A stretch of DNA of 32,000 bases from contig NW_008806276.1 in assembly GCF_000400465.1 (NCBI RefSeq), positions 120,001-152,000 of the forward strand, given 5' to 3'. This stretch comes from Wallemia ichthyophaga EXF-994. Lineage: Eukaryota > Fungi > Basidiomycota. This document shows positions 1-20,000 of the stretch, piece by piece; positions within the stretch are counted from its first letter, which is position 1; each line of letters opens with the position of its first letter. Below the pieces are notes generated by a model. The model did no database searches. It saw nothing but the letters and a program-made list of their open reading frames with translations, and was not told where the DNA came from. The position numbers and the translations under genes were made by a program.

Positions 1-456
1 GCTGAGCTTACCGGAGAAGAGGGAAGAGGAAGAGGAGAGGGAGGAGAGGGATGACTGTAATGACTGTGATGATTGTAGAGAATGCGTAGACTGCGATGAC
101 TGCGATGACTGCGACGAATCCAATGACTGTGAGCTGATAGAACTCTGTGTGCTCTGAGAACTAACGCTGCTAACGCTGCTAACACTGCTAACACTACTAG
201 CGCTACTAGCACTGCTAACACCGCTCTGTATCGATAAGCTGCTGACGCCCCCACCAATCATCGTAGTTCTACCGTCCGTCGCTGCATCTGGAGAAGCGAA
301 AGTAGGTGCTGGGCTCTGAGTACTTAAGATGATTGTTCCGGTGCCGTCGCCGCCAGCACCATCGTCACCACCATCAAACCACAAATCCCTCTTATTCGTA
401 CGCATCAAACGCCTCGGGTTCCTCGTCAGTGAGGGTATAGAATGTGCATCTGACAT
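1..456 (-). CDS. 5' part of a Ser-rich low-complexity protein, running off the left edge of the window
   Basis: ATG at 456 in ACCATG context. The frame is open to base 1: MSDAHSIPSLTRNPRRLMRTNKRDLWFDGG...SSASSASSVSSVSSVSSVSSQSTQSS...SSQSSQSSQ...SLSSLSSSSSLFS. It is absent from the ORF track, presumably because it has no stop in the window. Confidence 0.7.
   Translation of the reverse strand, partial: MSDAHSIPSLTRNPRRLMRTNKRDLWFDGGDDGAGGDGTGTIILSTQSPAPTFASPDAATDGRTTMIGGGVSSLSIQSGVSSASSASSVSSVSSVSSVSSQSTQSSISSQSLDSSQSSQSSQSTHSLQSSQSLQSSLSSLSSSSSLFSGKLS
50..220. repeat. Imperfect 9-bp coding tandem repeats (GACTGCGAT-like and TGCTAACAC/G-like units) encoding SSQ and SSV/SSA repeats on the minus strand
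   Basis: Seen directly: gactgcgat gactgcgat gactgcgac at ~90-117 and ctaacgctg ctaacgctg ctaacactg ctaacacta at ~160-196. Confidence 0.85.
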
Positions 457-641
457 GGTAATTGATAGCCGTGTCTAATTATTATTTGTTATTAAAATGA
501 GCGTGATTTGCTGTTTTCTATTTATCTTCCTCTTGGTTCTGAATCAGATGCACCTAGCAGTCGTCGATTCGCTAAAAATTATTTTGTAAATTATTTTCTA
601 TTTTATACAGCGCGCATTATCAACACTCATTACTCAGCTCA

Positions 642-2496
642 CTACACTACACTCCCTCCCTTAACCCACCTCATTCCCCCTTCCACCATCGTCACACTCC
701 CCGGCCTAAGCGCGTGCAGTGCCAACCTAGCTCCCACCTCTCCCACTGCCACCAAACACGCGATAACAATCAGCCATATGATTATTATCGTTATCCTGCT
801 CATTCCCTGCTCATTGACGTGTTCGTGAATGACTGTTTGCTTAATTAGTTTCTGCGATATTCCCCTAATGCTTACTTACTGTCTAACAAATCTCCCGCAA
901 CCGCTAACCGCTCATTCAGTGTCTGTACCCGCGCTCCTATTTCGAAATAATCCCTCCCCGCATCGTATAGCGCTTTGAGTCCAGCTTCTGACCAGAATAG
1001 CTCAGGTACATCGAGCACATTACTCACCAGATTAACATCCACACGCAATTTGAATAGCTTTCCTGTCAGTCGTATAGCCTGTCGACGATCGAGTGCTAAT
1101 GTCCCTGTCGCTGCCAGTTCCTTAGGTATAGTCGATGCACTATCTAGTACTCCCAGCGTCAATTCTTCAAACGCAGACAATTTCGTCGACTGCGCTAGAG
1201 CATGTGCCAATGACAGCTTCAAATAGTGCGAATTAGTCTTGAGAGTGAAGAAATCGTTCAATATCCTCGACGATGGTATGTTACTGTCTTGACCATAGTG
1301 ACATTGCTCCATCTCCCGACTATCTGGGTGCAGAGGTCGGACTACTACACCGGCATTCACCATGTCTTGCAATATATCCCGCTCTTGACTTTCTGTCATG
1401 TTGTAAAATACTGAAACTCCCTATCGCCCAGTTGTTAGCGTTGTTAGCTAACAGACTCACACTCCCAACTTACATAGTCAAAATGTATCACCTCCGCTAC
1501 CGTATCATTCACACTTTCCAGCTGCGTCTTCCATTTCCGTTTCGGTTTCGCTTTCTCTTTCTGAGTCTTTGTCTGTGTCTGCCTTCTCGACTCAGTGCTC
1601 TGCACATCGGCATCGTCGCGAGGTTCGTCCGTGTTGCTTTCTGGAATAGCTGCAACACTCGCACTACCATTCCCGCTCTCGTCCACACTGCCAGCAACGC
1701 CACCACCCTCGCGAATAAATCCATCGTCGTCAATCCTAGGGGGACTATTAGCGACGTCGTCGAAGGGGCGCTGGTGGCTATGATCCATCTCTGCTAGCTG
1801 GGGTAGCTCGTCTGCTTCCTCGTACATATCGATAATGCTGCCCCCGCCTGGGCTACGGGAGGGGTTGCTTGAACGAATACACGAAGCTGCGCTGTATCCT
1901 GGAAGCAAGGGACGATGGTAGACTGTGTAGATAGCCTCATCGTACTGCCTCGCCCATGCATTGTGCTCCCGCTTGCTGTATGCCGCTAGACTGCGCATCT
2001 TGTACCGCTCCCCCACGGCGTATGCGGTGAGACGATTGTGCGACGCTCGCTCTCGCTCCTCCTTCCCCATTCGCTCAGCCAGCCTGAACCGCGCCGACGT
2101 TCGCTCTTCTTCTTCTTCTTGTTGCTGTTCGTGCGCTGTGGGTGGGCGGTGCATGTGGCTGCCGGATGTACTCTCTCCCCTCTCACTCTCGTACGGCAAC
2201 GCTCGCGTCTGTATCTCCCCCGGCAGGAATACGTGTTTTTGGGATAGCTTCGACGTACGCACTGGGAGTGACTGCTTCGGAGGTCCTCGTGGAGGTGTGC
2301 CGCGCCCGATGAATCCATCTGATTGGTATTGGGAGTGGTGTGGTTGGTTTGTTAGAGATGCTGATGCTGATAATGCTGATTGCGGCTTGCGTAGATCGTA
2401 CGCTGTCCTCGCTATGCCTGGCAGCGGAACCTTAGCACGCCGCGCGTGTGTGTGCGCTGTGTGCGCTGTTTGCGTTGATTCGTTCGAGCTGCTCAT
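642..2496 (-). CDS. RMD1/RMD8-family DUF155 protein with a C-terminal TM helix, ~584 aa, 3 exons (2496-1474, 1420-880, 832-642)
   Basis: Splicing introns 1421-1473 and 833-879 (both GTAAGT..AG) joins the ORFs into FDY|GVSVFYNM, LDVPELFWSE and RVQTLNERL..LLD|IIHEHV..RITIIIIWLIVI. These are the characteristic DUF155 motifs. The long insertion within the domain resembles RMD8. Confidence 0.85.
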
Positions 2497-2559
2497 GGAG
2501 GTAAAGGTACAAGAGAGATAGTGTATTTTACCATGAATTATAATCCATGCATTGTACAA

Positions 2560-3183
2560 TCAAAGATCCTTCTCGGCGCTGCTCCTGTACTCACTTCTAT
2601 CGCTATCGCTGACGTATTCGAAATCCTCACTGGATCTGGGGAAGTTTGTCAAGTCAGTATCGATAGCTGGAGTTGATTGAGTTGCACTAGTAGATTGAGG
2701 TATACCATTTGTACCACTGGCGCCTCTCAGCTGATCCCAGCGTGAGCTACCCGCGTTACTACCAATACCATGGCTACTACTGCCACCACTGTCACCACGA
2801 ACCGTCTCCACACTCCCGCCGCCAGCCATCCTCTGCGCCCGCTTTACATCGCTCTCCCTGCTGATTCTCGCCAGCGTCTGGAGAACGACGCGTGGATCTC
2901 TGCCTTCTTGATTGAAATGACTGGCGAAACTCATCGCACCGACGTACTGGCCGAGGAAAGTGCCACTCACTCCACCCGCAAATGCCGGTAACGCCCATCT
3001 GCGCTGGTACCGCCTAGCCAGGTAGAAGAGCGAGCCCGCACCAGCCACAGCGCCGAATCCAACGTATCTGAGAGTTGTCTGGAGTGAGTTGTTGAGCATA
3101 TCCAGACTGTGTGTTGTGTGAGGTGTGAGATTTGTGCAAGCGTCGAGCATTCGCTGGCTGCTCGGCTGCTCCCACCCACTCAT
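2560..3183 (-). CDS. Hypothetical 207-aa protein with two Gly/Ala-rich hydrophobic helices and a disordered C-tail; probable small membrane protein
   Basis: Single long ORF containing YVGFGAVAGAGSLFYLA and ALPAFAGGVSGTFLGQYVGAMSF. Family not recognised. Confidence 0.75.
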   Translation of the reverse strand: MSGWEQPSSQRMLDACTNLTPHTTHSLDMLNNSLQTTLRYVGFGAVAGAGSLFYLARRYQRRWALPAFAGGVSGTFLGQYVGAMSFASHFNQEGRDPRVVLQTLARISRESDVKRAQRMAGGGSVETVRGDSGGSSSHGIGSNAGSSRWDQLRGASGTNGIPQSTSATQSTPAIDTDLTNFPRSSEDFEYVSDSDRSEYRSSAEKDL

Positions 3184-3256
3184 TCGCCTTGAGCTCCCCT
3201 TTGCTTATGTACTCCTCTACTAGCTCCCTATCTAGCCTTGTTCTCCGTTAGCTTGG

Positions 3257-3574
3257 CTAATTTCCTTTCTCGTCCACCCACTGTATCACTTTCGGCATTT
3301 TTATCTTGAATGACGTCGCGAACAAAGCAGGAAACTGTCGAATCGTCGACCAACTTGTTAAAATTTGGGATAAAATTAAGTCGATTGGGGCTGGATCCTT
3401 AGCTTTTGCCTGTAGATTCTTGCTCATTATACCCACTCTCCATTGTCTGCTCGACCATTTTGAACATTGAAACACCGAATTAGCTTGAAAGACACAGTAC
3501 AATTTGTATAATTTAGCAGCACCATTATAATCATAGATTCTCAAGCAATCCAACTCTACCTTTATGTCAGCCAT
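3257..3574 (-). CDS. Possible orphan ORF or last exon (105 aa); may be non-coding
   Basis: Open frame in a 685-bp gap between two genes, with GCTGAC..AAG resembling a branch point and acceptor near its start. No recognisable domain, and I could not find an in-frame donor. Confidence 0.25.
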   Translation of the reverse strand: MADIKVELDCLRIYDYNGAAKLYKLYCVFQANSVFQCSKWSSRQWRVGIMSKNLQAKAKDPAPIDLILSQILTSWSTIRQFPALFATSFKIKMPKVIQWVDEKGN

Positions 3575-3867
3575 CCACCCAATTTCCAGACTTCAACTTG
3601 CACTTAGCAGTTATCAGGATTCTTGCCTTTTATCATCTTCAAATAAAAAGGCTTGATAAATTGCCCTGATCCGTATTTTTAAGACTATACTAAAATTAGT
3701 CCTCTTCGGTAGCAATTTCGCCCTGTATTCTCCTTTGCCGTTTATATCCGGCATCACTATAGAGCACCCACGTGAGCAGATAACCAAGAGAGAGAGATAC
3801 ACGCTCTCATTTAATGTATCATATACATTTCAACATACATGCCATTCCATATTTCTAATTCTAATTT

Positions 3868-4659
3868 CTAATCCAGTGCAAGATGTTCAAAAGCCTTGCC
3901 GAGTTTGTGTTGCAAGTCTAAAGCCGGTGTATTTTTCGCCTTCTCTTCCTGCTCCTCTTTAACTTGCTCGCCCTCCTCATCGCCTTCCAACATGAAAACG
4001 TCTGCACCAGCATCAACGAGTGCGTCTCTGAGGGTGTGCGGCATGACCTCATACTCATCAGGATAAGCGTTGAGGGTAGCGATAGGATCCAACAGCACCA
4101 CTGCGAGTTTTTTGTGTGGGTATTTCTCGCTGAAATGGCTGCATACTCTACTGGCAAAATTTTCAACAGCAACTGCATCCAAATCCTCCTGCTCATCGCA
4201 CAGCTTCTGCAAGTCTTCCTTCTCCTCGAGCTCCATAGCGAGTATATCGCTCACCTCGATCAGTTTCTCGTTGTATCTCACGAATGTCTTCTCGTCTTGG
4301 CTGTCTCTGTCTGCGTACATATCGATCAGCTCGTCGTGCGCTTTGCGAGCGGTACCACTGAGATGTGAGCGGAATTGTTGAGTGAATTGCTCAAAATGCA
4401 CTGCGTTCCTAAGGTCGGTGAGGGTGAACACTAGCTTGTCATGAACAGCTTCTCCAGTCACACCTACGTCTACCACCAACATCTTCTCTTCTTCGTCAAT
4501 ATGCGCTAGTAGAAACACATGCGTTGCCACCTCTTCTTCACTAAGCGACGAAAGCGGCTTGATCGAGTCACCCAAGTTGAGATCACTGAGGTTGCTGATA
4601 TCGCTCAGGTCGCTCAATTCCGAGGTACTTGAGGTGTTTTCGACGTCTTGTTTTGTCAT
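3868..4659 (-). CDS. Acidic hypothetical protein, ~263 aa from the likely ATG at 4659 (MTKQDVENTSS...)
   Basis: Long uninterrupted, strongly D/E-rich ORF. The ORF track extends it to 4737 using a non-ATG start. No family recognised. Confidence 0.75.
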   Translation of the reverse strand: MTKQDVENTSSTSELSDLSDISNLSDLNLGDSIKPLSSLSEEEVATHVFLLAHIDEEEKMLVVDVGVTGEAVHDKLVFTLTDLRNAVHFEQFTQQFRSHLSGTARKAHDELIDMYADRDSQDEKTFVRYNEKLIEVSDILAMELEEKEDLQKLCDEQEDLDAVAVENFASRVCSHFSEKYPHKKLAVVLLDPIATLNAYPDEYEVMPHTLRDALVDAGADVFMLEGDEEGEQVKEEQEEKAKNTPALDLQHKLGKAFEHLALD

Positions 4660-5500
4660 TGCGTGGTACAGCGAGAGAAGGCGAGAAGAGTGATTCGCGC
4701 ACAGATAAGGGACAGATGAACAGATGAGCTGATGCACAGACGCGCAGTTGCACAGCTAAAGAATACGCCTAACGCACACTGCATAAGTAGAGCGTGCCGT
4801 ACGTGCCGTGTGTCAAAGTAAATTGGAGTTACAATTATAGTAACATATTACATGTACATTCAAGTATGCATTACATTTCACACTACACGCACCCAGTAGA
4901 AAACGCAAGGCAACACCCATCATCACACCCGCCGCTCCGAACGAAATAAGCAACGAATGGCTCTGGATCGCTGAGCTGCTTCGTCTACCTAATCCTACGC
5001 TCAGCCGCTTCCTTCTTCTCCCTATCCCCCTCTACTGTATTACGCGCTTTTTCCTGCTTGGTTTCTCTTACCTGCCTCTTGAAGTTGTTGAGGATATCGT
5101 TGGGTGTCTATGGAGATTGGTGTGTGGGGAGTATCTTCAGTGCCATAGTTGAGAATTTTGTCGTCTACCACTTCTATCCTATCGCGACAGTCAATCATCG
5201 CCTAGAAATCGCCAGCTCGCTGCCAACTTACTTCAGTGGATGATGGTCTAGAAAGTAGCAAGGTCATTGGAATGTGTGTGGTGTGCAGAAGAGCGTATTT
5301 CAGGGATCTATCTCCACTATCTGCGTAAAGTGGGCGTTTATACCACTTCTAGCTGAATATTTTCACTTAAAGCTCATAAAACACGCTACGCATCACCGAA
5401 GCACCAACCATACACTCCCTGCAACGCACGCACTCTACCTACAAACCATTCACTCACAATCACCTCTCGATCCTCCTTCAAATAGTCACACATCACGCCC

Positions 5501-5767
5501 ATGTCCATGCCAGCGAAAGAGGAAATAAACGCGCCAACGCCAGGAGACATAAACCAAGTGCGAGAATGGCTGACAGAGCACAATTACACCACAGATCCAA
5601 TGCAAGCGGTGCAGGAATTGAAGGAGCTAGTAAACGCACACGCCAGGCAGACGAGTGAGGGACTGGAAGTGGAGGAAGGGTATTCGGAGGCTTTCACCAA
5701 GCTCAGCGCGCTCATCAATAGCTTCAGATTCGCTTTAGCGGAGGAACAGCGCAGACAAGAGCAGTAA
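5501..5767 (+). CDS. Small helical hypothetical protein (88 aa)
   Basis: ATG-initiated ORF preceded by a CA-rich leader like those upstream of other genes here. The sequence is amphipathic and protein-like (INQVREWLTEH, AVQELKELVN, AFTKLSALINSFRFAL). Confidence 0.6.
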   Translation: MSMPAKEEINAPTPGDINQVREWLTEHNYTTDPMQAVQELKELVNAHARQTSEGLEVEEGYSEAFTKLSALINSFRFALAEEQRRQEQ

Positions 5768-6111
5768 AGGTATATCTTCAATTGTAATCATGTATAAATC
5801 GTTAAATAGCCATTGATAGACCATCTCTAGCCCACCATTGGCTGTCTGCGTTGCCACCACTCCACCTCCTCAGTACCACTCCAATCTCACCAGGGAAAAG
5901 AGAAATAATGATAAAAATAAGCTAGGAATACAACTGAGCCTACAAACACCCTTCACACACCCTCCCATACTCTCCACGGTTTAAAATCAGATTTTCATTT
6001 CAATCGCATCTCAGCAGAATTGCTCGCCTTCTTCCCCCAGCGACCTTCAGCAAGTAAAGTGAGGAAATTGAATAAAACAACGAAACCAAGCTCACAGAAT
6101 ATTTAACCAGG

Positions 6112-6734
6112 ATGCCTCACTCATTTGGTCTCCGCGCTCGTACCCGTCACTGTGAGTATGGCTTACAAGTTTTATTAAATGGCTGATGGAATGAGCAAGT
6201 GTTCTCCCGTAACTTCAAGGGTGTGTGAGGTGTACCCAACTCGCTGCATAGTCTAACGTCCCTCAGAGCACGGTCCAATCCACCTTAAAACCTACCTCAC
6301 TCCATACAAGGTTGGTGACATTGTAGACATCAAGGCTAACCCAGGTGAGCAACGCGGTATGCCACACAAGTTCTACCACGGGTGAGTTTTCATTCAAGCC
6401 CAAGAAGGCGCCACTCATTCCTCCATACAGTCGCACCGGTATCGTATTCAACGTCGCTCCACGTGCCGTTGGTGTCATCGTCTACAAGATTATCCGCTCC
6501 CGCTACATCGAGAAGCGTGTCAACTTGCGTATTGAGCACGTCAAGCACTCCAAGTGTCGTGAGGAGTTCTTGAGACGCGTTAAGAGCAACAGACAAGCTC
6601 TCTCTGAGGCTAAGCAAAAGGGCGAGCGTGTCAACCTTAAGCGTTCACCAAAGCAACCACGTGAAGGTCAAATGCTCAAGTCAAAGACTACTCCAGAGAC
6701 CATCGCTCCTATCGCTTACGATACTTACATTTAA
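6112..6734 (+). CDS. RPL21: 60S ribosomal protein L21 (eL21), 159 aa, 4 exons (6112-6151, 6200-6220, 6267-6381, 6431-6734)
   Basis: Spliced translation [78 protein letters not shown] matches the eL21 consensus. Introns are 6152-6199, 6221-6266 and 6382-6430. Confidence 0.97.
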
Positions 6735-6867
6735 ACTCGAAGAGTCTTTGTATTTGGCACTATTCATTCAAAACACTTGCTTAAAAATTCTTGTGAAATT
6801 GTCTCAAACCAAGTATTCATTCGAATTTCTGATATTAGAATACCCAGCCTTAGAAATTGTCTGCACA

Positions 6868-6921
6868 CATACTGCTGATAAGCCTTTTGAATGCCCTCAC
6901 CCGAGCTGCGATAAACGTTTC
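6868..6921 (+). pseudogene. C2H2 zinc-finger fragment (linker plus first half of a finger), apparently an orphan exon or relic
   Basis: Translates to HTADKPFECPHPSCDKRF, matching the HTGEKPF-C-x4-C-xKxF pattern, followed by a GTAGGA possible donor. No ATG lies between the RPL21 stop and the motif, and I found no downstream exon with the His pair. Confidence 0.5.
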
Positions 6922-7046
6922 GTAGGAAAATAAATGTCTCAAAAAATATTCATTCATTTGAATTCTTGTTATATAAAGTTGATAAGGGTAATTGAATCAA
7001 TGAAATTGTATCATATGTTGAAATCCGCTGCATTCATTCAAACGTC

Positions 7047-7217
7047 TTAATAGACTGGTTGTCTTCCGATTCCAAAGAAGTTTTCCTCTGAGTTCTAAGT
7101 GGTGTCAGTGTGTGCTAAGCGCGCTCGGTGTGCCGGCTGTGTATTTCAAACACTCACAACTGGTACAGCGGTTACTGCTGCGAATGCTGCTGCTAAAGCT
7201 ACTAATTTGATTTGCAT
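7047..7217 (-). CDS. 35-aa secreted microprotein or peptide precursor, MQIKLVALAAAFAAVTAVPVNSEENFFGIGRQPVY, 2 exons (7217-7158, 7094-7047)
   Basis: Exon 1 encodes a textbook signal peptide (n-region K, poly-Ala h-region, V-T-A then VP). The phase-0 intron 7095-7157 has a GTGAGT donor, CTGAC branch point and TAG acceptor. A TATAA lies at 7270-7274 on the minus strand. Confidence 0.75.
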
Positions 7218-8244
7218 ATTTCAATTTAACTGTCGTCGTTCGTCTACAAGATGTGAGCCGAGCGAGCAGTTATAAGTGATCCGACACTTGAATGCAGTTA
7301 CAAATAAAATTAATATTCTGGAACGTATTCGATAGCAAGGCACATGAGACTGTACAGATTCACGCATTCTCCATTCACTCTCACTCCCCTCGCCTTACGA
7401 ATGAGTTAACGCGTTCCTGTCCCTGGAATGTCCAATGAGGACTAATTGAAGTGGGGCACGTAAAAAAGTGTCATTTTAAGCGTATTGAGCAATATTATAT
7501 ACGCGTTTATTGTGGTTGTTGGGATTTTCTGCGTGTATGCAGCTATCTACATAGCGCATACGGTGAGCAAATAGGAGGAGCGATTATCGCGCGCTAATCA
7601 AATAGCCTTTCAGTATCTCTCTTTTATTTCTTAGGGCGCATATCACACTCGCACTCGTGATATCACTGTCGGCGAAATGAAATGTAATCAATTAATAACG
7701 CTGGAGCTGTCATATACAGCGTGACTTACGCTAGGTCTATCATCTTGGAATTTGTTTGGCTTGTGGAGATTACTTAGATGAGGGAATTATGTGCACTACT
7801 CTCTGTGCCTTCTTTGGAATTAATTACGGGTAAATTTTGATCCAATTGATCCATTCTAAACCTAGTTGGCACGCCAAACATGGCTATACATTCTTAGTAT
7901 TTCAAATTGGCTGTCTAAAAACAGTACAGAATGCATATTGCATTTAACGCGTTGGTAAAATCCACGTGATTTATGTCACTTTGAATAATTCGAGCCGTTG
8001 TCTATGTCTGGGAATGTCTACAGTTTCCAACGATAAAGAGCATATAAGCCCAAGTCCAAGCCATACAGACAATAAGACTTTACCGGTAGTCCGTATAACC
8101 GGTAACGTGGGGTGCTGTACATTAACCCGGGTACGCTGCACACGGTAAATTATAATCTATACTCTAGCTGATGATGTGCCAACCACTGTGGCCACCTATA
8201 CCACAACACGTAGCACCTCCATCTCCTCTAATTCTCTCTCTCAC

Positions 8245-8565
8245 ATGATCTTGCAAAGCCTGCAGAGCAGAGCGGATGGACTATACCAGAAAGCGCACCA
8301 AACAATCCACCCACTGCACCTCTGTTTGGCTATTTTCAGCTGCTTACTTACGCTCATAGGAGTTTGCAGTTTGGTAGCGTGAGCAAATACAAAAACGCAC
8401 GCACACAGCTAAAGTCGTCTAATCAGTGATAAAGAGGACCTGCCAATAGGTCCACACTCATACAAGGCTGGGATCGTTGCACTCGTCGCTGCCGTCTTTC
8501 TTTGGTTCGGAAATAGTTATTTGGTTTATAATCATTACATTAGCAAGTTAAGAAGGGGTGTGTAG
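8245..8565 (+). CDS. 90-aa two-transmembrane-helix orphan protein, 2 exons (8245-8378, 8427-8565)
   Basis: Intron 8379-8426 (GTGAGC..CTAAT.CAG, 48 nt) joins the exons in frame: MILQSLQSRADGLYQKAHQTIHPLHLCLAIFSCLLTLIGVCSLVADKEDLPIGPHSYKAGIVALVAAVFLWFGNSYLVYNHYISKLRRGV. TATAAT at 8151-8156. Confidence 0.7.
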
Positions 8566-8716
8566 GTAAACCAGCTACTTCGATACCTCCAAAGCCTTTC
8601 TACGTCTCATTGATGTATTTTTTCATCCTCAAATTTTCTTCTAAACTAATCAAATCCCTTTTCTCGTCGTGGCTTTTCTGCATTTTGTTCGAATATTCTG
8701 AGCATTTGGCTGTGAT

Positions 8717-9167
8717 TTAAATCTCCAATCCCACCTCAGATAATCCACAGGCGTTACAGCAGTTTAACTTGCCGTTCAGCCTCGATCTGTGCCAGTCTGT
8801 GAAGCGAGTCGCGTTTGAGACAGTCTCACCTGTACAAGTCTCACTCACAAGGCGTATATGAAATTTTACAGTTATAGCAAAATCTTTTAAATTTCTTCCT
8901 ATTTGCTGACTCGAGACACTCCTGGCGTATATACTTCTCATTCAAATTCTCCTCGAAAGGTCTCCTGGTTACCCCCCTCCCACTGAAATAGGCAATTACT
9001 GTCTGTTTGTGTAAGTGTGTATGTATGCTAGTTTCAGCATCGTCTGAAATTCTGTGTTTAAGATCGACCTGTCTTGCTCACCAGCCAGACAGAAGCGCGT
9101 TATGAGGTATGGAACAACAGGGTCTTTTCTCATTGCTTGAAGCTGGTAATTTATAGTTGCAACTCAT
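8717..9167 (-). CDS. Small GATA-type zinc-finger protein (~114 aa; exons 9167-9082, 9027-8849, 8796-8717); 5' and 3' ends uncertain
   Basis: Intron 8797-8848 (GTGAGT..CACAG) joins CYNCKISYTP|YWHRSRLNGKLNCCNACGL, the GATA pattern C-x2-C..TP.W.R..CNACGL. An upstream 54-nt intron (9028-9081) gives a frame-consistent start at ATG 9167. An alternative 3' exon ending at 8650 would need a 37-nt intron. Confidence 0.7.
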
Positions 9168-9466
9168 CTTACAAATATTCCTCCTTAAGTATGCAGCTTT
9201 GATTGATTTCTTGGAATGTGGTGAATTCATCCGTGGCCGCGGGGGTCTTTAATAAATGTGAAGAAGCCACGCTGCTAAATGAAACATACCTATGTGTAAA
9301 ACCGTAACTCCCTTCTCCAACATACATCCCACTTGGCTTTGTTCTGAGTAGGCAAAATTTCACGGTAATAAGAAGTCTCAGTGAGAAGAAAGATAGCGAG
9401 AGTGTAAGGAGGGGTTGTAATGAAAACACACGACAGTAAGATACAAATCTCAACTTTCGTAACCTT

Positions 9467-9638: not shown

Positions 9639-11410
9639 ATGTCCGCAGACGAATTGAAAGCCCAAGGAAACGCAGCGTTTAGCGCAAAAGACTTCACGAA
9701 AGCTGTAGACCTCTTCACGCAAGCCATCGCTCAAGACGCCAACAATCACGTCCTCTACTCAAACAGGTCGGCTTCTTACGCAGGTCTTAAGCAATACCAG
9801 AAGGCGCTAGACGATGCCAGCACCACAATAAGCAAGAAGTCTGATTGGCCAAAAGGTTACGCTAGAAAGGGCGCTGCGCTGCATGGATTGCAGCAGTACA
9901 TGGAATCAGTTGAGGCTTATGAGCAGGGTTTGAAAGCAGCTCCGACAGATTCTGGCTTGCAGAAGGGTTTGGCTGACGTCAAGGCTGCTGCTCAATCCGA
10001 CGACGACGGTCCAGGCAGAATCGCTGAAATGTTTAAAGATCCTAACCTCATTGGAAAATTGGCACAAAACCCTAAAGTTGCCCCAATGCTCGCTGATCCT
10101 GCGTTCATTGCTAAACTCAAGGCTATCCAATCGGGTGGTCAACCTTCACCAGACATATTCCAAGATCCACGCATGATACAGGTTATGGGCGCTTTGATGG
10201 GTGTCGATTTACAAGCATTTGAACGTCCAGAGGGTAGTGATCAACTTCCTGAAAACCTCCAGAAGGCAGACCCACCTAAGCCAGCAGCAGCCCCAGCTCC
10301 TTCTCCCTCACCCGCACCAGAGGCAAAGATGCAAGAAGCAACTCAACCAGCTGAGTCTTCTACTTCTGACGAAAAGAAGGAGGCTCTCAAAGCCAAACAA
10401 CAAGGTAATGAGCTCTACAAAGCCCGCAAGTTCGATGAAGCCATTCAAGCATACGAGAAGGCTTGGGAACTCGACAACTCGGACATCTCATACCTCACTA
10501 ACCTTTCAGCTGTTTTCTTCGAGAAGGGAGATCTTGAAAAGTGCCTAGAAGTTTGTGAAAAGGCTGTGGAAGAGGGTAGATCGATGCGAGCTGACTACAA
10601 GCTCGTCGCGAAGGCTCTCGGTCGTATCGGTAGTGTGTACTACAAGAAGAAGGATCTTGACGCGGCTGTGAACTACTTTAATAAGTCGCTCACAGAACAT
10701 CGCTCAGCTGATGTGCTCAACAAGCTCAGAGCCACTGAGAAGGAGAAGAAGGATGCCGAAGTGGAGGCATACATCAACCCAGAATTATCAGAAAAGTCGC
10801 GCGACGAAGGGAACGTAGCTTTCAAGGTGAGTCTAGATCACAATAGTGCCATCACATCACTAACAATCTTACTCAGCGTGGAGATTTTGCAGAGTCCGTC
10901 AAACTCTACTCCGAGGCAATAAAGAGACTGCCAGACAACGCGCGTGCATACACAAACAGAGCAACTGCGTACAACAAATTAGCTGCCCTTCCTGAAGCCC
11001 TCAAGGATGCCAACAAAGCTATAGACATCGACCCATCGTTCGTCAGAGCGCATATTCGCAAAGCTATGGTGTTGTTCGGCATGAGAGACTACACGCAAGC
11101 AGCAGCAGCGCTCGACAAGGCCACTGCAAATGATAAGGAGGGATCAAACGGCAAAGAGATCAGAGATTGGTCAGCCAAGATAAACTCAGCACTGTATAGC
11201 CAGCGTAGTGAGGAGTCAGATGAACAGACACTCGAGCGAGCAATGAGGGATCCAGAAGTGGCTGCTATCATGGGTGACCCAGTTATGCAGTCTATTTTGC
11301 AACAGTCACAAACTGATCCAGCTGTGCTGCAACACCATATGAAGTCATCGTCTGCTATTCAAGAAAAGGTGATGAAGTTGATCAACGCTGGTATTATAAA
11401 GACACGTTAA
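9639..11410 (+). CDS. STI1: Hsp70/Hsp90 organising co-chaperone Sti1/Hop, 573 aa, 2 exons (9639-10826, 10877-11410)
   Basis: TPR1 (MSADELKAQGNAAFSAKDF..LYSNRSASY), DP1 (DPRMIQVM), TPR2A, TPR2B and DP2 (RAMRDPEVAAIMGDPVMQSILQQ..KLINAGII). Intron 10827-10876 is GTGAGT..CTAAC..CAG. Confidence 0.96.
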
Positions 11411-11471
11411 AGTTTTACCTGTGTACTGTATGTGCATTGCTACAAATTGATTTTCTTATTTCGGCACTCCG

Positions 11472-12807
11472 ATGACTGAAAAAAGCGTGCTTATCGTTGG
11501 TGCTGGAGTGTTTGGGCTAAGCACAGCGTACGAGCTGTTGCAAGATGGATACAAAGTCACAATCGTTGAGCAGTCAGACCAAATTCCTTCTGAGAGCTCC
11601 AGTTCAACGGTATGTACGCCGAAGACCATCCCAGCCACGTTAAATACTCGCACAGGACATTTCCAAGATTGTCCGCGCAGACTACAGCTCAGCCGTCTAC
11701 TCAAAGCTCGCAGCAGAATCGATAGCGGATCTTGAGAAGAACTGGACAGAGGCTGGCTTCTTCCATCAGTGCGGGATGGTTGTTCTAGGGGAAAGTGACT
11801 ACGCTAAGGCGTCTTACAAGCATGTGAAATCTATGTATCCTGAGCAGGTGCGTTTGCTCGACCAATCTTCCATACAAGACGTCCTGCCGAAGAATGTTCC
11901 ACTGAATAGCCTCACGCGCACAGCATATCAAAACAAAGCAAGCGGATGGATCGAGTCTGGGAGAGCTACAGCCGAATTGGCCAGACGCTGTGAGGAAATG
12001 GGTGCGACACTCATCCCTAATTTCACCGTTGGCCGTGTTATTTGGAGTGGTGACAATGACAGAGTTGTAGGCGTAGAGAGTGCTTCCGGAGAGGTACTTG
12101 ATGCTGCTCTTACCATTATCGCGTCAGGCGCGTGGTCCACTCTGCTCGACGACCAGATCAACAAGATGCTCCTCGCGTCTGCGCAGTCTGTGGCCATGAT
12201 TAAGCTCACTGAAGAGCAACACGAGCGATACAAAGACTCCCCTATCGTCATCAACCTCAATACCGGGATTTATATGTTTCCCCCCACTTCCACGCGCTAT
12301 TTCAAGGTATCCAAGCATCACGCAGGGTACATCAGTAGAGAGCGCAATGCACCAGTCTCGATAGATACCAAACGCGAGCAACTAGGTGAAGACGAGCCTC
12401 CACTGTCCATCTCCAAAATACCTAGCGTGATGTACGACGAGCTCCGAAATGGTTTGAAAGAGGTTTATCCGGAGATAGCTAATGACTCGTCGCTGGAGTG
12501 GAAAACGAGGATGTGTTGGTACTGCGATGCTCAGAACGGCGATTATATTATAGATTACCACCCCCTTTCCAACAAGTCGCTCCTGTTCGCCACTGGCGGC
12601 AGCGGACATGCCTACAAAATGTACACTGTTCTCGGCAAACTCGTCAAGCAACGTATGGACGGTACACTGGATGCGGAGATGAGCGACATGTTTAGTATAC
12701 AGCGCGATACAGAGCAGGTGCCTGTCGTCGATAAAAGCAGATTGGACACAGTCAGGCGCGATTTTTCGGTCGCGTTCATGGCTGAAGGCCAGCAGCAGCC
12801 CAAATAG
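11472..12807 (+). CDS. FAD-dependent oxidoreductase of the sarcosine/pipecolate/fructosyl-amino-acid oxidase (DAO-like) family, 429 aa, 2 exons (11472-11609, 11656-12807)
   Basis: Rossmann motif VLIVGAGVFGLSTA, ST|DISKIVRADY across intron 11610-11655, CWYCD..GDYIIDYHP and ATGGSGHAYK. Confidence 0.88.
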
Positions 12808-12965
12808 GCATGAAAATTTTGTACTGCTATTTGGTACGACGAAATTTCGCTAAGTCTCAAGATATAAAATGAGAACCACTACCAGGTGGATATAGAATAA
12901 TTAGACTATAATTTGTTGAAAATAAGTGTATGCTTTCATGCTACACCACATTGCATCCTGACATC

Positions 12966-14020
12966 ATGCAAGATAAGACTGCAATCGTGTTTGTGCATGG
13001 GTGAGTGGGATGCTCCCTTCTAACAAGCACTCAATCACACCGAACAGCTTTAAAGGCGGCGTGGATACATTCGGAAGTCTACCGCAAGATATGGAGTGTT
13101 GGCTGGGCATGCAAACCGAGCTAGACAAATACACCTCAACAGTGTATCCTGCGTGGAAGACGTCTGGGAAGTTGGTGGGTTGATGGACGAGGTACTCAAA
13201 TACAATAACCCCAACACACTTGCAGGAAATCGCAGTAGACAATCTGCAAGCCTGGATGGCAGAGCAACAACTGCAAAACCAGTACACGGCCTTCGTACTA
13301 GTCGCGCATTCAATGGGTGGACTTCTCGCCTGCGACGTGTACCTCAAGTCCCTCCGAGAAGGAAACAGACTGAACATAAAGGCTGTTCTCAATCTCGACT
13401 GTCCCATGATTGGCTTACACCCACATGTATTCGCTAATACTACGAACGACTATTACAACAAGTTTAACAAAGTCAAAGATGTCGCAAGTGGCGCATCGGT
13501 GCTGATACCTTTTGTCGGTGCATTGTGGGGCGCGAATAAGTCTGATAAAAGCGGTGCCGAACAGAGAGATGAGCGAGAGAAAAAGGTTAAAGACAAGGAA
13601 CACAATGTACAACCTAACACAAACTACCTCAAACCGGCAGGCGCAGCTATAGCAGCTATATCTGCAGTAGGCGCAGGTGCTTACTTTGGGAGAGATAAGA
13701 TATTAGAGGCGTATCGAGCAGCAGCAGGTCTGACTACCGATCACTTGCTCTTTTTGTCAAACTTGTGGAACACGCGCAGCCTCAAAGAGCGCCTGGATAG
13801 CATGTCTAATGCACCTGTGGTATTCAAAAACTACTATACCCACCTTCCACATCTCAATGATAGGACTTTTTGTCTCATACCTGCTAAGCACAGCAGTTTC
13901 ATCAAGACTTCAAACTCCCTCGCCAACGATGAGATTAGCGCACATATTAACATGTTCAACGCTTCTTCTAACAGCAGCTACCATCAACTTCTCAAGCATC
14001 TTGTCGAGGATGCACTCTAA
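12966..14020 (+). CDS. Alpha/beta-hydrolase-fold protein (DUF676-like putative serine esterase/lipase), 318 aa, 3 exons (12966-13000, 13048-13174, 13226-14020)
   Basis: IVFVHG|FKG after removing intron 13001-13047, a second intron at 13175-13225, a nucleophile elbow AHSMGG, and DCPMIG. Confidence 0.8.
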
Positions 14021-14038
14021 CAAATATTTTACAACAAT

Positions 14039-17000
14039 CTATGACGACTTGATGCTATCAGTGTATTCTTCCAACATTTTCAGATCGTGGTACCGCGCCA
14101 CTGAGTTTATAACTTGGAGACGCCTTTTGAATGCTTCGCGTGATGTTGTCAGCTTCCAAGCACCAGAACAGTGACAATGTGCAGCTAAATCGGAAGATCC
14201 TGAGACGCGTTAGAGTAGCCAAGATAACATTTCAGCACCCACTAATCGTGCCACACTTGGAGCATTTGAGATCTTGCACGGCGAACCCAGCAACCAGCTT
14301 GTCTACAACACCTAACAGTGACAGCTCCACCTCCATCTTGTCCTGTGAGCGACCGCAGGAAGCACATGGCCATTCTTCTTCAAGAAGCTCTACATCACGC
14401 ACGAGGTCGAGATCCTGAACAAATGTACATGCTTTGCACACCACACCTGTCACCTTAAAGCTTTCACAAGGCGGCTTGAATTGGGCATCCTCGGAGCTGG
14501 AGATGGGTGTTAGCGGGACTCACAAGAAGTACGAATACACCCACAATTCTCGTACTTTCAATATATCCAGCAGGTTGCGTTTCAGTACTGTCACCTCAAT
14601 AGCAACATCTCTAGACAACCCTAACACAGTGCACACACTCTTAACAAATTCCAACGTTGGGTTCTTCATATTACCCTGTGAGCCTGGAAGGAGAGGGAAG
14701 ATAAACATGTTGGCCTCTTCGTTGTCTTCCACACCGCTCGCCAACTCCGTCGCCGCTTCCGACTGTTTGCGAGACATCTCGGTGACTATCTTGAGTAGTC
14801 TCCTAGTGATCACACGCGTGATCAAATTCCTCTCAAAGTCTATTTCTTGCTTTTTGTAATCATCAACCGCAACCTCGCCTCCTTCGTTAGCGATCGCTCG
14901 CAGTGGTTTTCTGTATTGTAGACCCATCTTGCGTTTCTCAGAATACATGGCGTAGATATACTCAGCTATGACTATATCAAAGTAGTTTTGCAAAGCTGGT
15001 GGGAGATACTGTGGGACGTTCCACTTCATATCGACATGGAACTCCTCAGGCGGAGAGGATGAATTTGGAGCGTGATTGACGACACCACCGAAATTGGACA
15101 GATCCATCCACACCAGATAGTCCCAGAAGTTTACCGTCGTAAGTGTAATGTGCTTGAACAATTCAGCCGAGGTTGTAGCCGAGAGAATGTACTGTGCGTA
15201 CGCGGCAGCTGAGCCAGCAGTTGGTTTCGATGTGAGGATGAAAATTCGTCCAAAGTCCGCATAAACTATACCTGAACCAAGTCTCTTGATTTCCGCTAAA
15301 AGCTGCAAGAATACTTTCTTCATTAGTCCTCGCAGGAAGCGATGAATACCTGGATCGAAGAGTCGTGACACTGGTGAAGAGATCCACCTGAGCAAATGAT
15401 CAACCAATAAATGTCCAAATGCACTCTGTCCGTCAGCTGACTTTGCCTTATCTAGATACCAGCTTTTGACCATCGACTTGAGAATGGAGAAGACCTGCGA
15501 TGACACGACAGCCTCTCCCAACGTGACAGAAGCTTTGGCCTGCCCTTTTGTATACTCATCTATGGTGTGTGATGTACTGTCAAAGACAGTAGCTGCAGAT
15601 CCTGCACCTTCCATCTCATTTACAAGCGACGACTGAAGGATAGAGTTGACGGCAATATCTCGCAACTCAACTTCAAGTACGACGTTTGAAAATGTGCCAG
15701 GGTTTGAGAACTCTTCAGGCCCACCGCCTTCGTCTGCAAATTGTTGAGGAGGCACATCCTGTTCACGTCCACCGAGATCAGGCTTCGACGAATGAGACCA
15801 CCAAAGTAGGATATCACTTTTAATTAATCGCCTAGCAAACGATATGTCAGACAGCTGTATAGGGGCGTCCCTCTCTATGTTACCAACAGGGACGTCATAA
15901 TGCTTAGCCAGCCCGATCCTCTCGTGAATCCAAGCCGACATACGGAAGTACATACCAATCATCCTCTTAGATATCTTCGGCAGCCACATCAGACTCTCGT
16001 CGATACTCAAATCTTTGCGGGACGTGGGCACTGCAATGACAGGGTAATTGTTTAGTCCGTCACCAAATTGAGAGAAGTAGGATTGCGATTGGGGCGAGTT
16101 TAGGACAACAATTGTAGGACCTTGCCTCTGACCACCAAGGGTATTGAGATATCTGAACATGTTCTTGACAGCAGACTGTTCGCCACCGTGGAAAGTAACT
16201 TCAAAAGACATTTCAGAACTATACTCAAATGCCTCGTCGTTCTCCTCAGATTTACGGGATAGATAACTTTCATAACTCTGTCCATAGACCTTGTCCAAAT
16301 TTGGCAGCTGTGGACGCGTCCTACTGGATGAATCCACAATAAATATCTTGCATTCACCATCTGGAGAGAAGACACTATATATGTGGCGGCGATCTACGTA
16401 AGCGTGGAACATGTAGATGTACCGCAGCTGGTTGAAGTTTTGCAGATAGGTTTTAGAATTTTGAGCTGCATTGGAGAGCTCCACTAATTCGAAACCGCGG
16501 TCAAGACCCTTGCTTAGTCCACCAGTTGATGCTTTCGAAAGTGCGCACTTTGATCCCAGCCTGATCAACGCACGATCAATAAGTGGTACCTGAATTTTGC
16601 GTTAATGTGAACAGTCAGTGAGGTACTACATCCAACCCACCTGCATCTCGTAGACACTGTCAACATTTATGTTACTCGTCAGATTCTTGAAGTGAGACTC
16701 ATTGTCGACGTAGAGTCGCTCAGGGACAGTCAACTTGAAAAGATTGAGACATGGTTGGTCACGTGGCAAGCTTCTCACGACCCTCTCAGCCATATACTCT
16801 TCCGCAAATTCACCTTCACCAGGTGCATTTTTGAGGTTGAGATAGAACTCCCTCGGTATCCTCAAGCGGACTTGTTGGAAATTACCGCCAAGGCTTAACC
16901 ACAACCTGAATTCACCAGGTCTAACGGAGGGATAGATTTGCACTATATCCCAAGCACTCCCACTAAATCCAACAGAGCGGTCTTGGAACATACCAAGAGC

Positions 17001-20000
17001 AGTCTGACGCGAAACGCCTGCTTGATTCCTCGAAGCCTTCGATCCATGCTTCCTCTTATATGCCCTCTGCAACTTCCAACGCTTACGCATTACTCTAATG
17101 AATGCACTGTAATCCTCATCGGCATCTGGGACAGGGATGGACATGACTCTCTCATACTCTTCCTCCTCGAGCTGCTGACGGTTTTTCTTGCGCACTGCTG
17201 CCTGCTTCGGTTTGCCATTGACAGATGGACCGATGCCCAAGTCCTCCATGTCCTGGTTAACCTCTCTCTGCTTCTCGAACATATCAGTCAGCTTGTGCTG
17301 TCTGAATTTGTCATCCGAATTCGCTATTCTCTTGTAGAGCCAATCCGGGTGAGCGATGCGTGGGACTGGGTTGGGTATCTTCTGCAGGGCTGCTGGAATA
17401 GTGATAATTTTTTGAACAACTGAACCGAATCTCTCAATATAGTAATCCCAATCGAGAATGCTTCTAATATCAAAGTCAGTCAGACTGTTATCCTTCAGCC
17501 ATTTACGCAGATAGTGAGATTTGATAGACTGTTCAGCAGTGAAGATGGTAACCGGTACAGCTCTTTCAGTAACAGGAGCACCGAATGGTTTGGCAGAAAT
17601 AATGTATCGACAACTAAGACCCTTATCTTTGACCATCTGCTCACCCAAGAACTCTGCAAGTCTGCGAGCTGTTGATATGGAGGTGGATTTCTGACCCTCG
17701 TACTCGGCAAGTGTTTTACTCATTGATCGATTCTCGGAAATCAGTTCAACTAGCTCCTCATCAGATAAAGTGGAACCTTTACCGAAGAGAATATCCAGCC
17801 ATTGGTCCGCAACTTTGGCGACAGCATCGTAGCACTCCTTTGTCGTCGATCCTAACAAAAATTTACTGAAAATTTCGCTTTGGAAGAATTTGATGAGCTG
17901 CAGTTCACCCCTGCGCTTCACTTCGAATCCCTTTAATTCTGCTAAAGAACCGTCCTCTTCGAACACCGCGTATCGCTTCTTCAGCAGCTTATCTTCTTCT
18001 TTGGAGGCAGGTAAGATCATCGCACGATATGGTCCATCCAATTCGAAGAAAATACTATTCTCCGAATGCATTTCATACTCCCCTTTGTCCTTGTTGGTGA
18101 GAGTGTGGTATTGGTCGTTGGTGAATTTTCCGTGGACAAGGTGATTAAGCATAACACATGGGTAAGAGAAGCCCATGGTTTTGCCGCCCTTAAGAGTGAA
18201 TTTAAAGTTTTCAGGAAAGCAGCCTGGAAGCATACACCAAATACCGTCAGTATCTAATTCAAGCGGTCTGCCAATCTGTTCGACGAGCTGACGAGCCATC
18301 TGGATGATAGTCGCACCAGTCAAGCAAGTTATACCTGCCATCTCCATAGAATACCATCTCGCACCTTTACGCATGACATAACCGTAGAAAGAGTTAAGAA
18401 TGCACTTGTGGGCGAGTTGAAGGGAGTCGTAAAGAGTTATCATATTCTTAGCCTCAACTGAGGCAGACAAACTGCCCTCTTCATTTGCATTGTCTAATTT
18501 ACCTTTCCACTGCTTGTGAAAACCTTTGTACTCATACCGTCTATCGCGAAACGCCCTAACTGTGTCAATGTAGAACGGGTTTTCGCGCTGACAGATTATA
18601 GCTTCACGGTTGATGATTTTGGTATCGTGTGTTTTGCGATAAACCTTCCTCGAGTAATCCCCAAGACGCTTCTGTATTAGAGCGGACTGTTCAGTAGGCG
18701 AGAGCTCGACAAAGCGTCTCTTGGGCGCACCTATCTGACGACCAGGGAAAGACTCCGATTCGAGTGCGTGTCTAATCATATTGTACTCATCTCGCTTTGC
18801 AGGGAAAAATTCACCACGCCAAGCCCATGTCAAACGCCTATCACACTGCTTATCGGGGGTGTTGTAGTCACATGCTGCGCACATTCCCTCATCAACCACG
18901 GCATCTGGCTGTAGCCTGTTTGACAACATGATCTAAGAGAAGGTGTGTTAGCATGTGTGTAAGACATACTACTCACTCACATTCGGATACATGGCAGCAA
19001 CGTCAAGATGGTAGATCAACGGTGGATCTTGTCTGACGGGATTATCACGAAGATTCTCCAAAACCCCCTTGATCTCATTCTTGACTTGCTCGTAATTCTC
19101 CACATCCTCCAACCTCTTCTTCTCCTCGACGACAATGGAGAACTGGAGTGCGTTGTCGAGGTCATCAATGAGCTGAGGCGAGGAGAATGAGTGTCATCGC
19201 CACCGAATCAAACAAATCCTACTAACCTGCTGAATAGCCTTGGGGACAATCTTGAAATCAGTAGCTATGTCATTCCTGAACACACCAGCTTCCAACGCTT
19301 CGACGTGACCACCGACATAAGTCTCTGACGACAGCAGATGTCCTTCATACATACTGCCTTGTGGGTCGACGTGTCTGTTGGGCATTATGACGCCAGCACT
19401 GTAAGCCTCGACCATGAGCAGAGTTTCACAGAGCGTGCCAGAACCCTTGCGAAGGACATCGTCGGGGTTGAGAGGTATAATGTTGCAGAGGGAGAAGACG
19501 AAACTGAGAGAGCGTTAGTGTGAGGTGATGAAAGGAGAAAGTGAAACTGACGGATGGATATATTTCATGTAGAGGTAGTAAGTAGCTACGGCGTCAGACA
19601 CCGAATACTGAGCGAGCACTTGCGGCTGCTCAATGGCGTATCTAGAAAAAAGGGTGAGTGGTGTATTCAAAGTTGAGCCTGAGAAAACCTACGGTGTCAT
19701 GAGCTCTGGATCAAGTTCAATGGGGTTGTAGCCGAGTTTGGCAACAGTGACAGCTTTGAGACCGTGACTACCCTGGGGGAGATAGGAATCCCGCTTCACC
19801 CATCTGAAACAATCCATGTGTGAACAAGTTGCACTTTTATACTCATCCTCATTGTCCCTCTCGAAACCTGTCTCGGCGTAGAGACTCAAACCATTTGCAG
19901 TGGCGCGAGCATCGACGTAAGGAAAATCGAAGAAATCACCGTTGTAAGTAGCCATGACGGTGGGTTGAACCTGTCTGATGTGCTCGAAGAAGCGTTTCAA

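Follow-up and report, generated by a model that had tools for sequence, protein, structure and literature searches.

Kex2-processed repeat proteins (KEPs) are widespread in fungi, with 7878 reported from 1345 strains (PMC7329392), and have been defined by a signal peptide, the lack of a transmembrane segment, at least four fragments delimited by Lys-Arg (KR) or Arg-Arg (RR), and at least three similar repeats (Le Marquer 2019, PMC6339444). The KEPs of Basidiomycota give rise, according to peptidomics and heterologous expression, to short linear peptides, and several of their cores end in Trp (PMC9769878). Wallemia ichthyophaga, whose strain EXF-994 is an obligately halophilic basidiomycete (PMC4987115; PMC3849046), was singled out together with W. 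sebi as relatively KEP-rich, and KEX1, KEX2 and STE13 are not among the proteases found missing in Wallemia by BLAST (Table S1b, PMC6339444). Here we describe a locus in a 32-kb stretch of the EXF-994 genome (the window; KE007226.1:120001-152000, assembly GCA_000400465.1), which, on comparison with other strains and lineages, very probably represents the 5' and 3' ends of an unannotated, alpha-factor-like KEP gene. This peptide gene is located on the minus strand, inside a 2.9-kb stretch carrying no annotated genes: the deposited record calls no gene between RPL21 (5501-6734, plus strand) and STI1 (9639-11410, plus strand), the latter encoding an Hsp90 co-chaperone.

As assembled in the reference, the gene is comprised of two exons. 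The ATG start codon is located at 7217 on the minus strand, with an in-frame TGA two codons upstream, and opens a 60-nucleotide (nt) exon 1 (7217-7158, minus strand), which ends in phase 0 and encodes MQIKLVALAAAFAAVTAVPV, a predicted signal peptide. Intron 1 (7157-7095, minus strand) spans 63 nt and displays a GTGAGT donor, a CTGAC branch and a TAG acceptor; left unspliced, it would introduce an in-frame stop (TGA) after 23 codons. Exon 2 (7094-7047, minus strand) is a 48-nt exon encoding NSEENFFGIGRQPVY followed by TAA; it corresponds to a terminal repeat-unit exon and is the sole unit in the reference assembly. A TATAA box, read directly from the sequence, lies at 7270-7274 (minus strand), approximately 57 nt 5' of the ATG. 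A first-pass annotation, made from the letters of the stretch, had proposed these exons and this intron with the TATAA upstream, and all of them are present on the minus strand; the alternative acceptors that it listed (7115 and others) also exist in the sequence. Its observation that the product has neither a CAAX box nor a Cys holds as well, the product ending in QPVY-stop, and its central proposal of an unannotated, intron-containing gene for a secreted short-peptide precursor is supported by the comparisons across strains and lineages presented below.

A mechanical scan of the 32-kb window for an ATG, a signal-peptide-like exon of 15-30 codons, a GTRNGT donor, a CTRAY branch, a YAG acceptor and an exon of at least 10 codons returned one match, the peptide-gene locus, and first-order Markov simulations gave 0.025 loci per window (1 match in 40 windows), a figure that is indicative only since the criteria were set post hoc. 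Verified introns of a like class are found in neighbouring genes, namely a 50-nt intron in STI1 (GTGAGT, CTAAC, CAG) and a 46-nt intron in a gene for an FAD-dependent oxidoreductase of the DAO family, and a mean intron length of 61 nt has been published (PMC3849046). The interval gave no match in Rfam or tRNA scans, so that no RNA gene accounts for the region.

The nature of the gene is revealed by three contigs assembled from further W. ichthyophaga strains and retrieved with a neighbouring single-exon gene, namely SPOD01000055 (L003), SPOJ01000042 (L004) and SPOB01000057 (L005). These contigs share 99-99.8% identity with the window, and their blastn alignments stop at 7111, inside intron 1; past this position they enter a tandem array and end there, not reaching exon 1 (array stretches seen: L003 1-330, L004 1-125 and L005 1-122). 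The array unit of 102 nt is composed of a 57-nt exon (NSEENFFGIGRQPVYKRDD) and a 45-nt intron. The unit exon reads AAC TCA GAG GAA AAC TTC TTT GGA ATC GGA AGA CAA CCA GTT TAC AAG AGG GAT GAC, which translates as NSEENFFGIGRQPVY-KR-DD; internal units thus continue GTT TAC AAG AGG GAT GAC (V-Y-K-R-D-D) into the 45-nt intron, and the peptide units are thereby separated by Lys-Arg, a canonical Kex2 site. The inter-unit intron, GTGGGTGGATGTTTGCAGTGAAGGATAAACACTGACACCACTAAG, has a canonical GTGGGT donor, a CTGAC branch, an AG acceptor and an in-frame TGA, and every between-unit intron of the W. ichthyophaga arrays contains an in-frame stop. In L003, Tandem Repeats Finder reported 3.2 copies with 97% matches up to the contig end, and three KR sites and four units are found before the contig ends. 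The last array unit in all three contigs is the exon 2 of the window, ending in Y-stop instead of Y-K-R, with one synonymous GGA/GGT difference in L004.

The arrays also bear on the splice site. The 3' 17 nt of intron 1 (7095-7111, minus strand; ACACTGACACCACTTAG) are common to the 45-nt inter-unit introns, and mark the point where the reference and the arrays of the other strains diverge. The junction that joins CTGACACCACTTAG to AACTCAGAGG recurs at every repeat unit of the other strains, which supports the use of the acceptor at 7095. The competing acceptor at 7115, which would yield a 46-amino-acid (aa) product, is ruled out, the 7095 junction being the one repeated at every unit. Two other statements of the first-pass annotation do not survive. 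It had described a stand-alone 35-aa product, and the exon 2 unit is carried in tandem by other strains; it had also denied that the product has KR repeats or looks like a Kex2-processed repeat protein, and an orthologue with eight units and seven KR sites is found in a sister lineage. With tandem KR-units in the strains and in this orthologue, the gene belongs to the very class that had been excluded.

Relatives were found by a search with the STI1 open reading frame (ORF), which gave the long contigs L006-L013, and the loci around STI1 and RPL21 were examined. On contig L006 (Logan assembly, run SRR25399871), the STI1 ORF is 88% identical to that of the window and the gene order is the same. 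In the RPL21-STI1 interval of L006, a complete 9-exon gene (7271-6353) occupies the same strand as its counterpart in the window. Its exon 1 is 60 nt long and encodes MQIKLAALAVAISAVVAGPV; behind it lie eight more exons (35-70 nt), and the eight canonical GT..AG introns between the exons measure 98, 55, 47, 48, 47, 49, 43 and 46 nt. When spliced, these exons form one 161-aa ORF, MQIKLAALAVAISAVVAGPV NSEESYVNPPPNQLWKR GDVEAESYTGPGPNQTWKR ADEEEGLVNIPPNQVYKR ADEESYTGPGPNQTWKR GDNSEESYMNLRPNQVWKR DNSEESYMNLRPNQVWKR GNSEESYTNVRPNQTWKR ADEESLVNNPPNQVY-stop, which consists of a signal peptide and eight units, one per exon, with KR after seven of them and a stop after the last. The units follow the pattern [SG][YL]xxxxPNQx[WY]. 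A second relative, L013 (run ERR12743352), whose STI1 is 81% identical, possesses the same signal-peptide exon (MQIKFLGIAALVAAVSAGPV), followed by an intron and, where the contig ends, by NSEESYTN.

Sequence conservation between the lineages is confined to particular parts of the gene. Exon 1 shows 81% nt identity to L006 7206-7274 and 76% to L013 128-193, and its flanking intron cannot be aligned. Besides exon 1, the species have kept NSEE as the spacer, the KR sites and a block of the 3'-UTR (untranslated region; 6988-7035, minus strand) just past the stop codon, which has 79% nt identity to L006 6300-6347, a segment placed right behind the stop codon of the L006 gene; neither intron 1 nor the cores of the peptides can be aligned. 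A 5'-leader block, CGAACGACGAC, is common to the window and L006, and a conserved upstream block in the putative promoter region (7361-7457, no strand assigned) has 72% nt identity over 104 nt to L006 7414-7514; the TATAA box as such is not kept in L006. The first-pass description of an acidic NSEE spacer and an aromatic core stands, the two being read now as the conserved spacer and the variable core of a repeat unit.

The mode of repeat evolution is very different in the two lineages. All units seen in W. ichthyophaga encode an identical peptide, as in a homogenised array, versus five distinct cores in the single gene of L006. The eight unit introns of L006 fall into two position classes: phase-0 introns located just before NSEE (KR-[G/D]-[D], intron, NSEES-Y), and phase-1 introns that interrupt the Ser/Glu codon behind the acidic stretch (KR-ADEE, intron, S-Y). 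Such positions suggest two rounds or types of exon-plus-intron module duplication.

Coding function is demonstrated by the pattern of substitutions. Tandem Repeats Finder detected no DNA-level repeat on L006, though the peptide pattern persists. The two L006 units encoding SYTGPGPNQTWKR differ by five synonymous and no non-synonymous changes (proportion of synonymous differences, pS, 0.58; of non-synonymous differences, pN, 0.00), and the two encoding SYMNLRPNQVWKR have a pS of 0.88 and a pN of 0.03; for the units GLVNIPPNQVY and SLVNNPPNQVY, pS is 0.80 and pN 0.08. When the first two pairs are combined, synonymous changes make up 11 of 12, versus approximately 20% expected (P ~2e-7). Among the units and strains of W. 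ichthyophaga, two of 57 exon sites vary, both of them synonymous third positions, versus seven of 45 intron sites (Fisher P = 0.04). As judged from these substitution patterns, the gene is coding and its peptides are under purifying selection.

The assignment to the KEPs follows from the features of the precursor. A signal peptide with seven KR sites and eight similar units is found in L006, and the L003 array likewise has the number of fragments and repeats by which KEPs are defined. The signal peptide has a basic n-region (MQIK) and an 11-residue h-region with a mean Kyte-Doolittle value of 2.65-2.74. V-x-A at positions -3 to -1, followed by x-P-V, is kept in the window, L006 and L013; the earlier reading of exon 1 as a signal peptide is thus upheld by a predicted cleavage context kept in three lineages, and so is the x-Pro start after the cut that it had pointed out (VP, GP and GP). 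No hydrophobic stretch occurs beyond the signal peptide in the 161-aa L006 product or in the W. ichthyophaga units.

The following processing route is proposed. The precursor would consist of a 17-residue signal peptide and tandem short peptide units encoded by one small exon each, and the presumed mRNA would be spliced at every unit boundary. The signal peptide would direct co-translational entry into the endoplasmic reticulum and would be cut after V-T-A (V-x-A). In the Golgi, Kex2 would cut after each Lys-Arg, after which the carboxypeptidase Kex1 would take off the K and R, so that n copies of DDNSEENFFGIGRQPVY (DDNSEE-NFFGIGRQPVY, 17 aa, net charge -3) may be secreted. Further N-terminal trimming of the acidic spacer could give the 11-aa core NFFGIGRQPVY (net charge +1), and the candidate linear forms are DDNSEENFFGIGRQPVY, NSEENFFGIGRQPVY, VNSEENFFGIGRQPVY and NFFGIGRQPVY. 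The final copy, terminated by the stop codon, would need no Kex2 for its release, and the first copy would begin with V-P-V, whose x-Pro dipeptide is a plausible substrate for a Ste13-type dipeptidyl aminopeptidase; this x-Pro after the signal-peptide cut (VP/GP) is the only one. The peptides would be linear or minimally modified, 11-17 aa in length, and an extracellular action is most probable, either as a signal or in the interaction with other organisms.

Several observations weigh against the KEP assignment. The transcript, its splicing and the peptides are predicted from genomic sequence. The signal peptide was called by rule, from its n-, h- and c-regions and with the -3/-1 rule, rather than by a trained predictor. 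The residues that follow KR, which are DD-NS-EE in W. ichthyophaga and GD, AD-EE, D-NS-EE or G-NS-EE in L006, are none of them X-Ala or X-Pro, so the spacers carry no Ste13 motif and the mature N-terminus is not fixed by sequence. The reference, as deposited, holds one unit and no KR site, below the repeat number of the KEP definition, and GTTTACAAGAGGGATGACGTGGGT is absent from it. Physical linkage of exon 1 to a multi-unit array is seen in L006 only, not in W. ichthyophaga itself; the STI1-side contigs of its other strains gave no record when searched for via the ORFs of the window's STI1 and DAO exons. In contigs L007-L012, whose STI1 is 74% identical, the fetched 21 kb of a rearranged STI1 neighbourhood contained no orthologue. 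Finally, neither the spliced product nor a relative of it was found in approximately 15 billion predicted proteins, including ORFs from assembled public sequencing runs.

The single unit of the reference is most likely an effect of assembly. The 17 nt at 7095-7111 and the next 42 nt of exon make up approximately 59 nt, which recur unchanged at the matching place of every array unit. For EXF-994, short Illumina reads were joined by SOAPdenovo at K=21 (PMC3849046), and as the shared sequence is considerably longer than this K, the assembler can bypass the loop that the array forms in the assembly graph. For the 21 later strains, 150-nt reads were assembled with k up to 120 (PMC6738226); the three contigs examined break exactly in the array, which at such k points to several near-identical units. 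Taken from these sequence and assembly parameters, the 35-aa form in EXF-994 most likely reflects an array collapsed in the K=21 de Bruijn assembly, and at best a minimal allele. The rival reading takes the single unit as a real allele, so that EXF-994 would truly possess a stand-alone 35-aa precursor (signal peptide, VPV and one 15-aa peptide) that needs no Kex2. It matches the deposited sequence as read, and since every array closes with a unit ending in Y-stop, one copy could be released without Kex2. We nevertheless consider it unlikely: the approximately 59 nt common to intron 1 and every unit stand against an assembly at K=21, all three other strain contigs end in the array with k up to 120, and the strain genomes were reported to be highly similar to the reference (PMC6738226), in agreement with the 99-99.8% identity of the flanks found here. 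Even if it were true for EXF-994, the family would stay one of KR-repeat precursors.

Alternatively, the gene could encode the precursor of a peptide made by ribosomes and modified post-translationally (RiPP), in which the KR-flanked cores are tailored by macrocyclisation or oxidation, as in the ustiloxin/dikaritin or epichloecyclin type, and NSEE serves as a recognition segment. Its architecture of a signal peptide, KR repeats, a conserved flank and a hypervariable core is that of ustiloxin-type precursors (PMC7329392), the cores carry Tyr, Phe or Trp together with Pro, and the DAO-family oxidoreductase gene is located two genes away (11472-12807). However, no gene for DUF3328/UstYa, a tyrosinase, a P450, a methyltransferase or a prolyl-oligopeptidase was found in the 32-kb window, where the genes and large ORFs identified by Pfam are RPL21, STI1, the DAO oxidoreductase, an alpha/beta hydrolase, DNA polymerase epsilon, EF-G, CIAPIN1, Exo_endo_phos, an EFR3-like protein, a kinase, DUF155 and a ZIP transporter. 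The DAO gene stays beside STI1 in the L007 lineage without the peptide gene nearby, and the cores of the two species (NFFGIGRQPVY and SYMNLRPNQVW) differ too widely to suit a single fixed cross-linking chemistry. Among the KEP genes of basidiomycetes, only 6% have a DUF3328 neighbour (PMC7329392). Taken together, a tailored product appears quite improbable.

A genuine alpha-type, Kex2-released mating pheromone in a basidiomycete is harder still to uphold. The precursor is laid out like prepro-alpha-factor, its peptides of 11-13 aa have aromatic ends and a central Pro/Gly-Gln, and the cores change rapidly from one sister lineage to the other, in the manner of pheromones. The cores recall alpha-factors of Saccharomycetes ending in PGQPMY or PGQPIF, a resemblance that offers a lead and not a test. 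Alpha-pheromone-like KEPs have also been reported in Basidiomycota (PMC6339444; PMC9769878). Against this, an hmmscan of the L006 product and the 4-unit W. ichthyophaga product versus Pfam-A (E<=10) gave no MF_alpha or MF_alpha_N, and no X-Ala or X-Pro Ste13 spacer follows KR. STE2-class receptors are reported from Ascomycota only (PMC12842992), and STE3 with two candidate CAAX pheromone precursors is already present at the mating-type (MAT) locus of W. ichthyophaga (PMC6738226); the gene described here is found between the housekeeping genes RPL21 and STI1, not at that locus. A mating pheromone of the alpha type is therefore considered very unlikely. Finally, a non-coding minisatellite or a decaying pseudogene with chance open frames, which the lack of annotation in any assembly and the reliance on genomic sequence might seem to allow, is practically dismissed by the eight consecutive canonical introns that hold one frame in L006, by identical L006 peptides encoded with near-saturated synonymous divergence, by the limitation of W. 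ichthyophaga variation to introns and third codon positions, and by the signal-peptide exon and KR sites kept in three lineages.

The KEP precursor favoured here belongs to a family that, judged by database searches, is new. Padded to 40 aa, the peptide had no match among 5.8 billion proteins in a word-indexed search, and a profile search of 5.8 billion clustered proteins with the L006 and W. ichthyophaga products retrieved only an L006 ORF fragment, P0121. An exhaustive phmmer search with this fragment against 1.84 billion representatives gave nothing but noise, in the form of bacterial surface-repeat proteins aligned with the intron-derived stretch of P0121. The Pfam scan of the products gave neither MF_alpha nor any other family, only sub-threshold chance matches, and one metagenome, searched with the degenerate pattern N-S-E-E-[SN]-[YF]-x8-[WY]-K-R, contained a single chance match on an unrelated AT-rich contig. 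The motifs FFGIG, RQPVY, PNQVW and PNQTW do not occur in the supplements of the two KEP surveys, and neither a paralogue, which the first-pass annotation had suggested looking for, nor another [WYF]-KR cluster was found in the window or in L007-type loci. The KEP class is thus known and widespread, and within the reach of these searches the peptide family is a new one with no detectable relative. The exon-per-unit structure explains why such a gene is missed by gene finders and by proteome-based surveys.

The surroundings of the gene differ among the relatives. In L007-L012, which are metagenome and genome contigs from ENA and Logan, the gene order differs from that of window positions 9639-21063: DNA polymerase epsilon and the alpha/beta-hydrolase gene are located upstream of STI1, in inverted arrangement, and RPL21 and the peptide gene are not adjacent. 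This arrangement indicates, as far as the contigs reveal, that an inversion or transposition breakpoint adjoins the peptide-gene locus. The RPL21-STI1 interval of the window also contains two further conserved, unannotated, intron-containing genes. The first (8246-8566, plus strand; exon 1 to 8378, intron 8379-8426, exon 2 8427-8566) encodes a small protein of approximately 90 aa with two hydrophobic segments (MILQSLQSRADGLYQKAHQTIHPLHLCLAIFSCLLTLIGVCSLVA and, after the intron, DKEDLPIGPHSYKAGIVALVAAVFLWFGNSYLVYNHYISKLRRGV). By tblastx, its two exon segments show 80% and 91% aa identity to L006, and 52% and 76% to L013; no Pfam family scored above threshold. This gene and the peptide gene point away from each other and share an upstream region of approximately 1 kb (7217 to ~8246). 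The second (~8720-9170, minus strand) is a small gene that is split by an intron and encodes a GATA-type zinc finger (KRFCYNCKISYTP and, after the intron, YWHRSRLNGKLNCCNACGLSE; Pfam GATA 25.3 bits versus a cut-off of 26.8, E = 1e-5), whose blocks have 57-72% aa identity to L006 and L013. At 5501-6734 (plus strand), the 247-aa reference model joins an 88-aa ORF (5501-5767, MSMPAKEEINAPTPGD) to RPL21, and the MAKER annotations of other strains show two genes at this place (69 or 86 aa, and a 159-aa Ribosomal_L21e protein); the reference model is probably a merged gene.

With the KEP assignment, an orphan family of Kex2-repeat precursors is added in the most halophilic fungus known, in a class whose functions are almost all unknown. 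The exon-per-repeat layout would provide a simple route to copy-number change and core diversification, as seen in L006. The gene also exposes a blind spot: both large KEP surveys mined annotated proteomes, the gene escaped GeneMark-ES as well as MAKER, and its array of small exons (44-70 nt), with one peptide on each, is collapsed or broken by short-read assemblers. Similar genes are probably hidden in other intron-rich fungi. One tentative role, to which we give a low probability, is that of a secreted cell-cell signal of the W. ichthyophaga lineage of the Wallemiomycetes, acting as an autocrine or quorum signal or as a non-canonical mating or developmental cue. If so, alpha-factor-style release in a phylum said to lack Ste2 would imply an undescribed peptide receptor, and the acidic spacer after KR, the fast-changing 11-aa core (NFFGIGRQPVY versus SYMNLRPNQVW/SYTGPGPNQTW) and the modular exons would be the signature of ligand-receptor co-evolution. 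Concrete and cheap targets are available in the form of synthetic 11-17-mers for bioassay and of exact masses for peptidomics of high-salt supernatants.

When compared with known systems, the gene resembles Saccharomyces cerevisiae prepro-alpha-factor (MFalpha1/MFalpha2) in its signal peptide, its KR-spacer-peptide units and, on paper, its processing by Kex2 and Kex1, as well as in the 11-13-aa peptide with a C-terminal aromatic residue and the acidic spacer residues. It differs in having no glycosylated pro-region of approximately 60 aa and no (Glu/Asp)-Ala Ste13 dipeptides, in being interrupted by introns and in its lack of a Pfam MF_alpha match; moreover, a Ste2-type receptor has not been reported in Basidiomycota (PMC12842992). 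The ustiloxin/dikaritin and epichloecyclin (GigA) precursors share the signal peptide, the KR-separated repeats, the short core and the conserved flanks, whereas here the 32-kb window contains no tailoring gene and the cores are not conserved between sister lineages. The MSDIN precursors of amatoxins and cycloamanides have no signal peptide, and consist of a conserved MSDIN leader, a single Pro-flanked core and a conserved follower. An assignment to this type is ruled out by the signal peptide, the KR repeats, the lack of an MSDIN leader and the mere VY that follows the last Pro. The Rep1 protein of Ustilago maydis is another secreted repeat protein of a basidiomycete that Kex2 cleaves into numerous peptides, which are much longer, at tens of residues. 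Rep1 peptides form amyloid-like surface fibrils (PMC9769878), and the units described here are 15-19 aa in length, acidic and, in L006, Pro-rich, so that building of Rep1-like fibrils by them is unlikely. The basidiomycete precursors of CAAX lipopeptide pheromones, of which two candidates are located at the MAT locus of the same organism (PMC6738226), are also short; they have no signal peptide, are prenylated and are exported by an ABC transporter, in contrast to the signal peptide and the absence of Cys and CAAX found here. The fungal KEPs, especially the alpha-pheromone-like ones of Basidiomycota (PMC6339444; PMC7329392; PMC9769878), differ in their X-Ala or X-Pro spacers, versus the acidic ones seen here (DD-NSEE, ADEE), and a limited literature search found no description of the present architecture, in which every unit is placed on its own exon with 43-55-nt introns between units. 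In the remaining features the gene is like them: the signal peptide is the only domain, at least three near-identical units are separated by KR, the last unit is located at the stop codon, and, as in the KEP cores of Coprinopsis (C. cinerea) and Pleurotus (QYKAPSW, SGVAADW; PMC9769878), the peptides end in Trp or Tyr.

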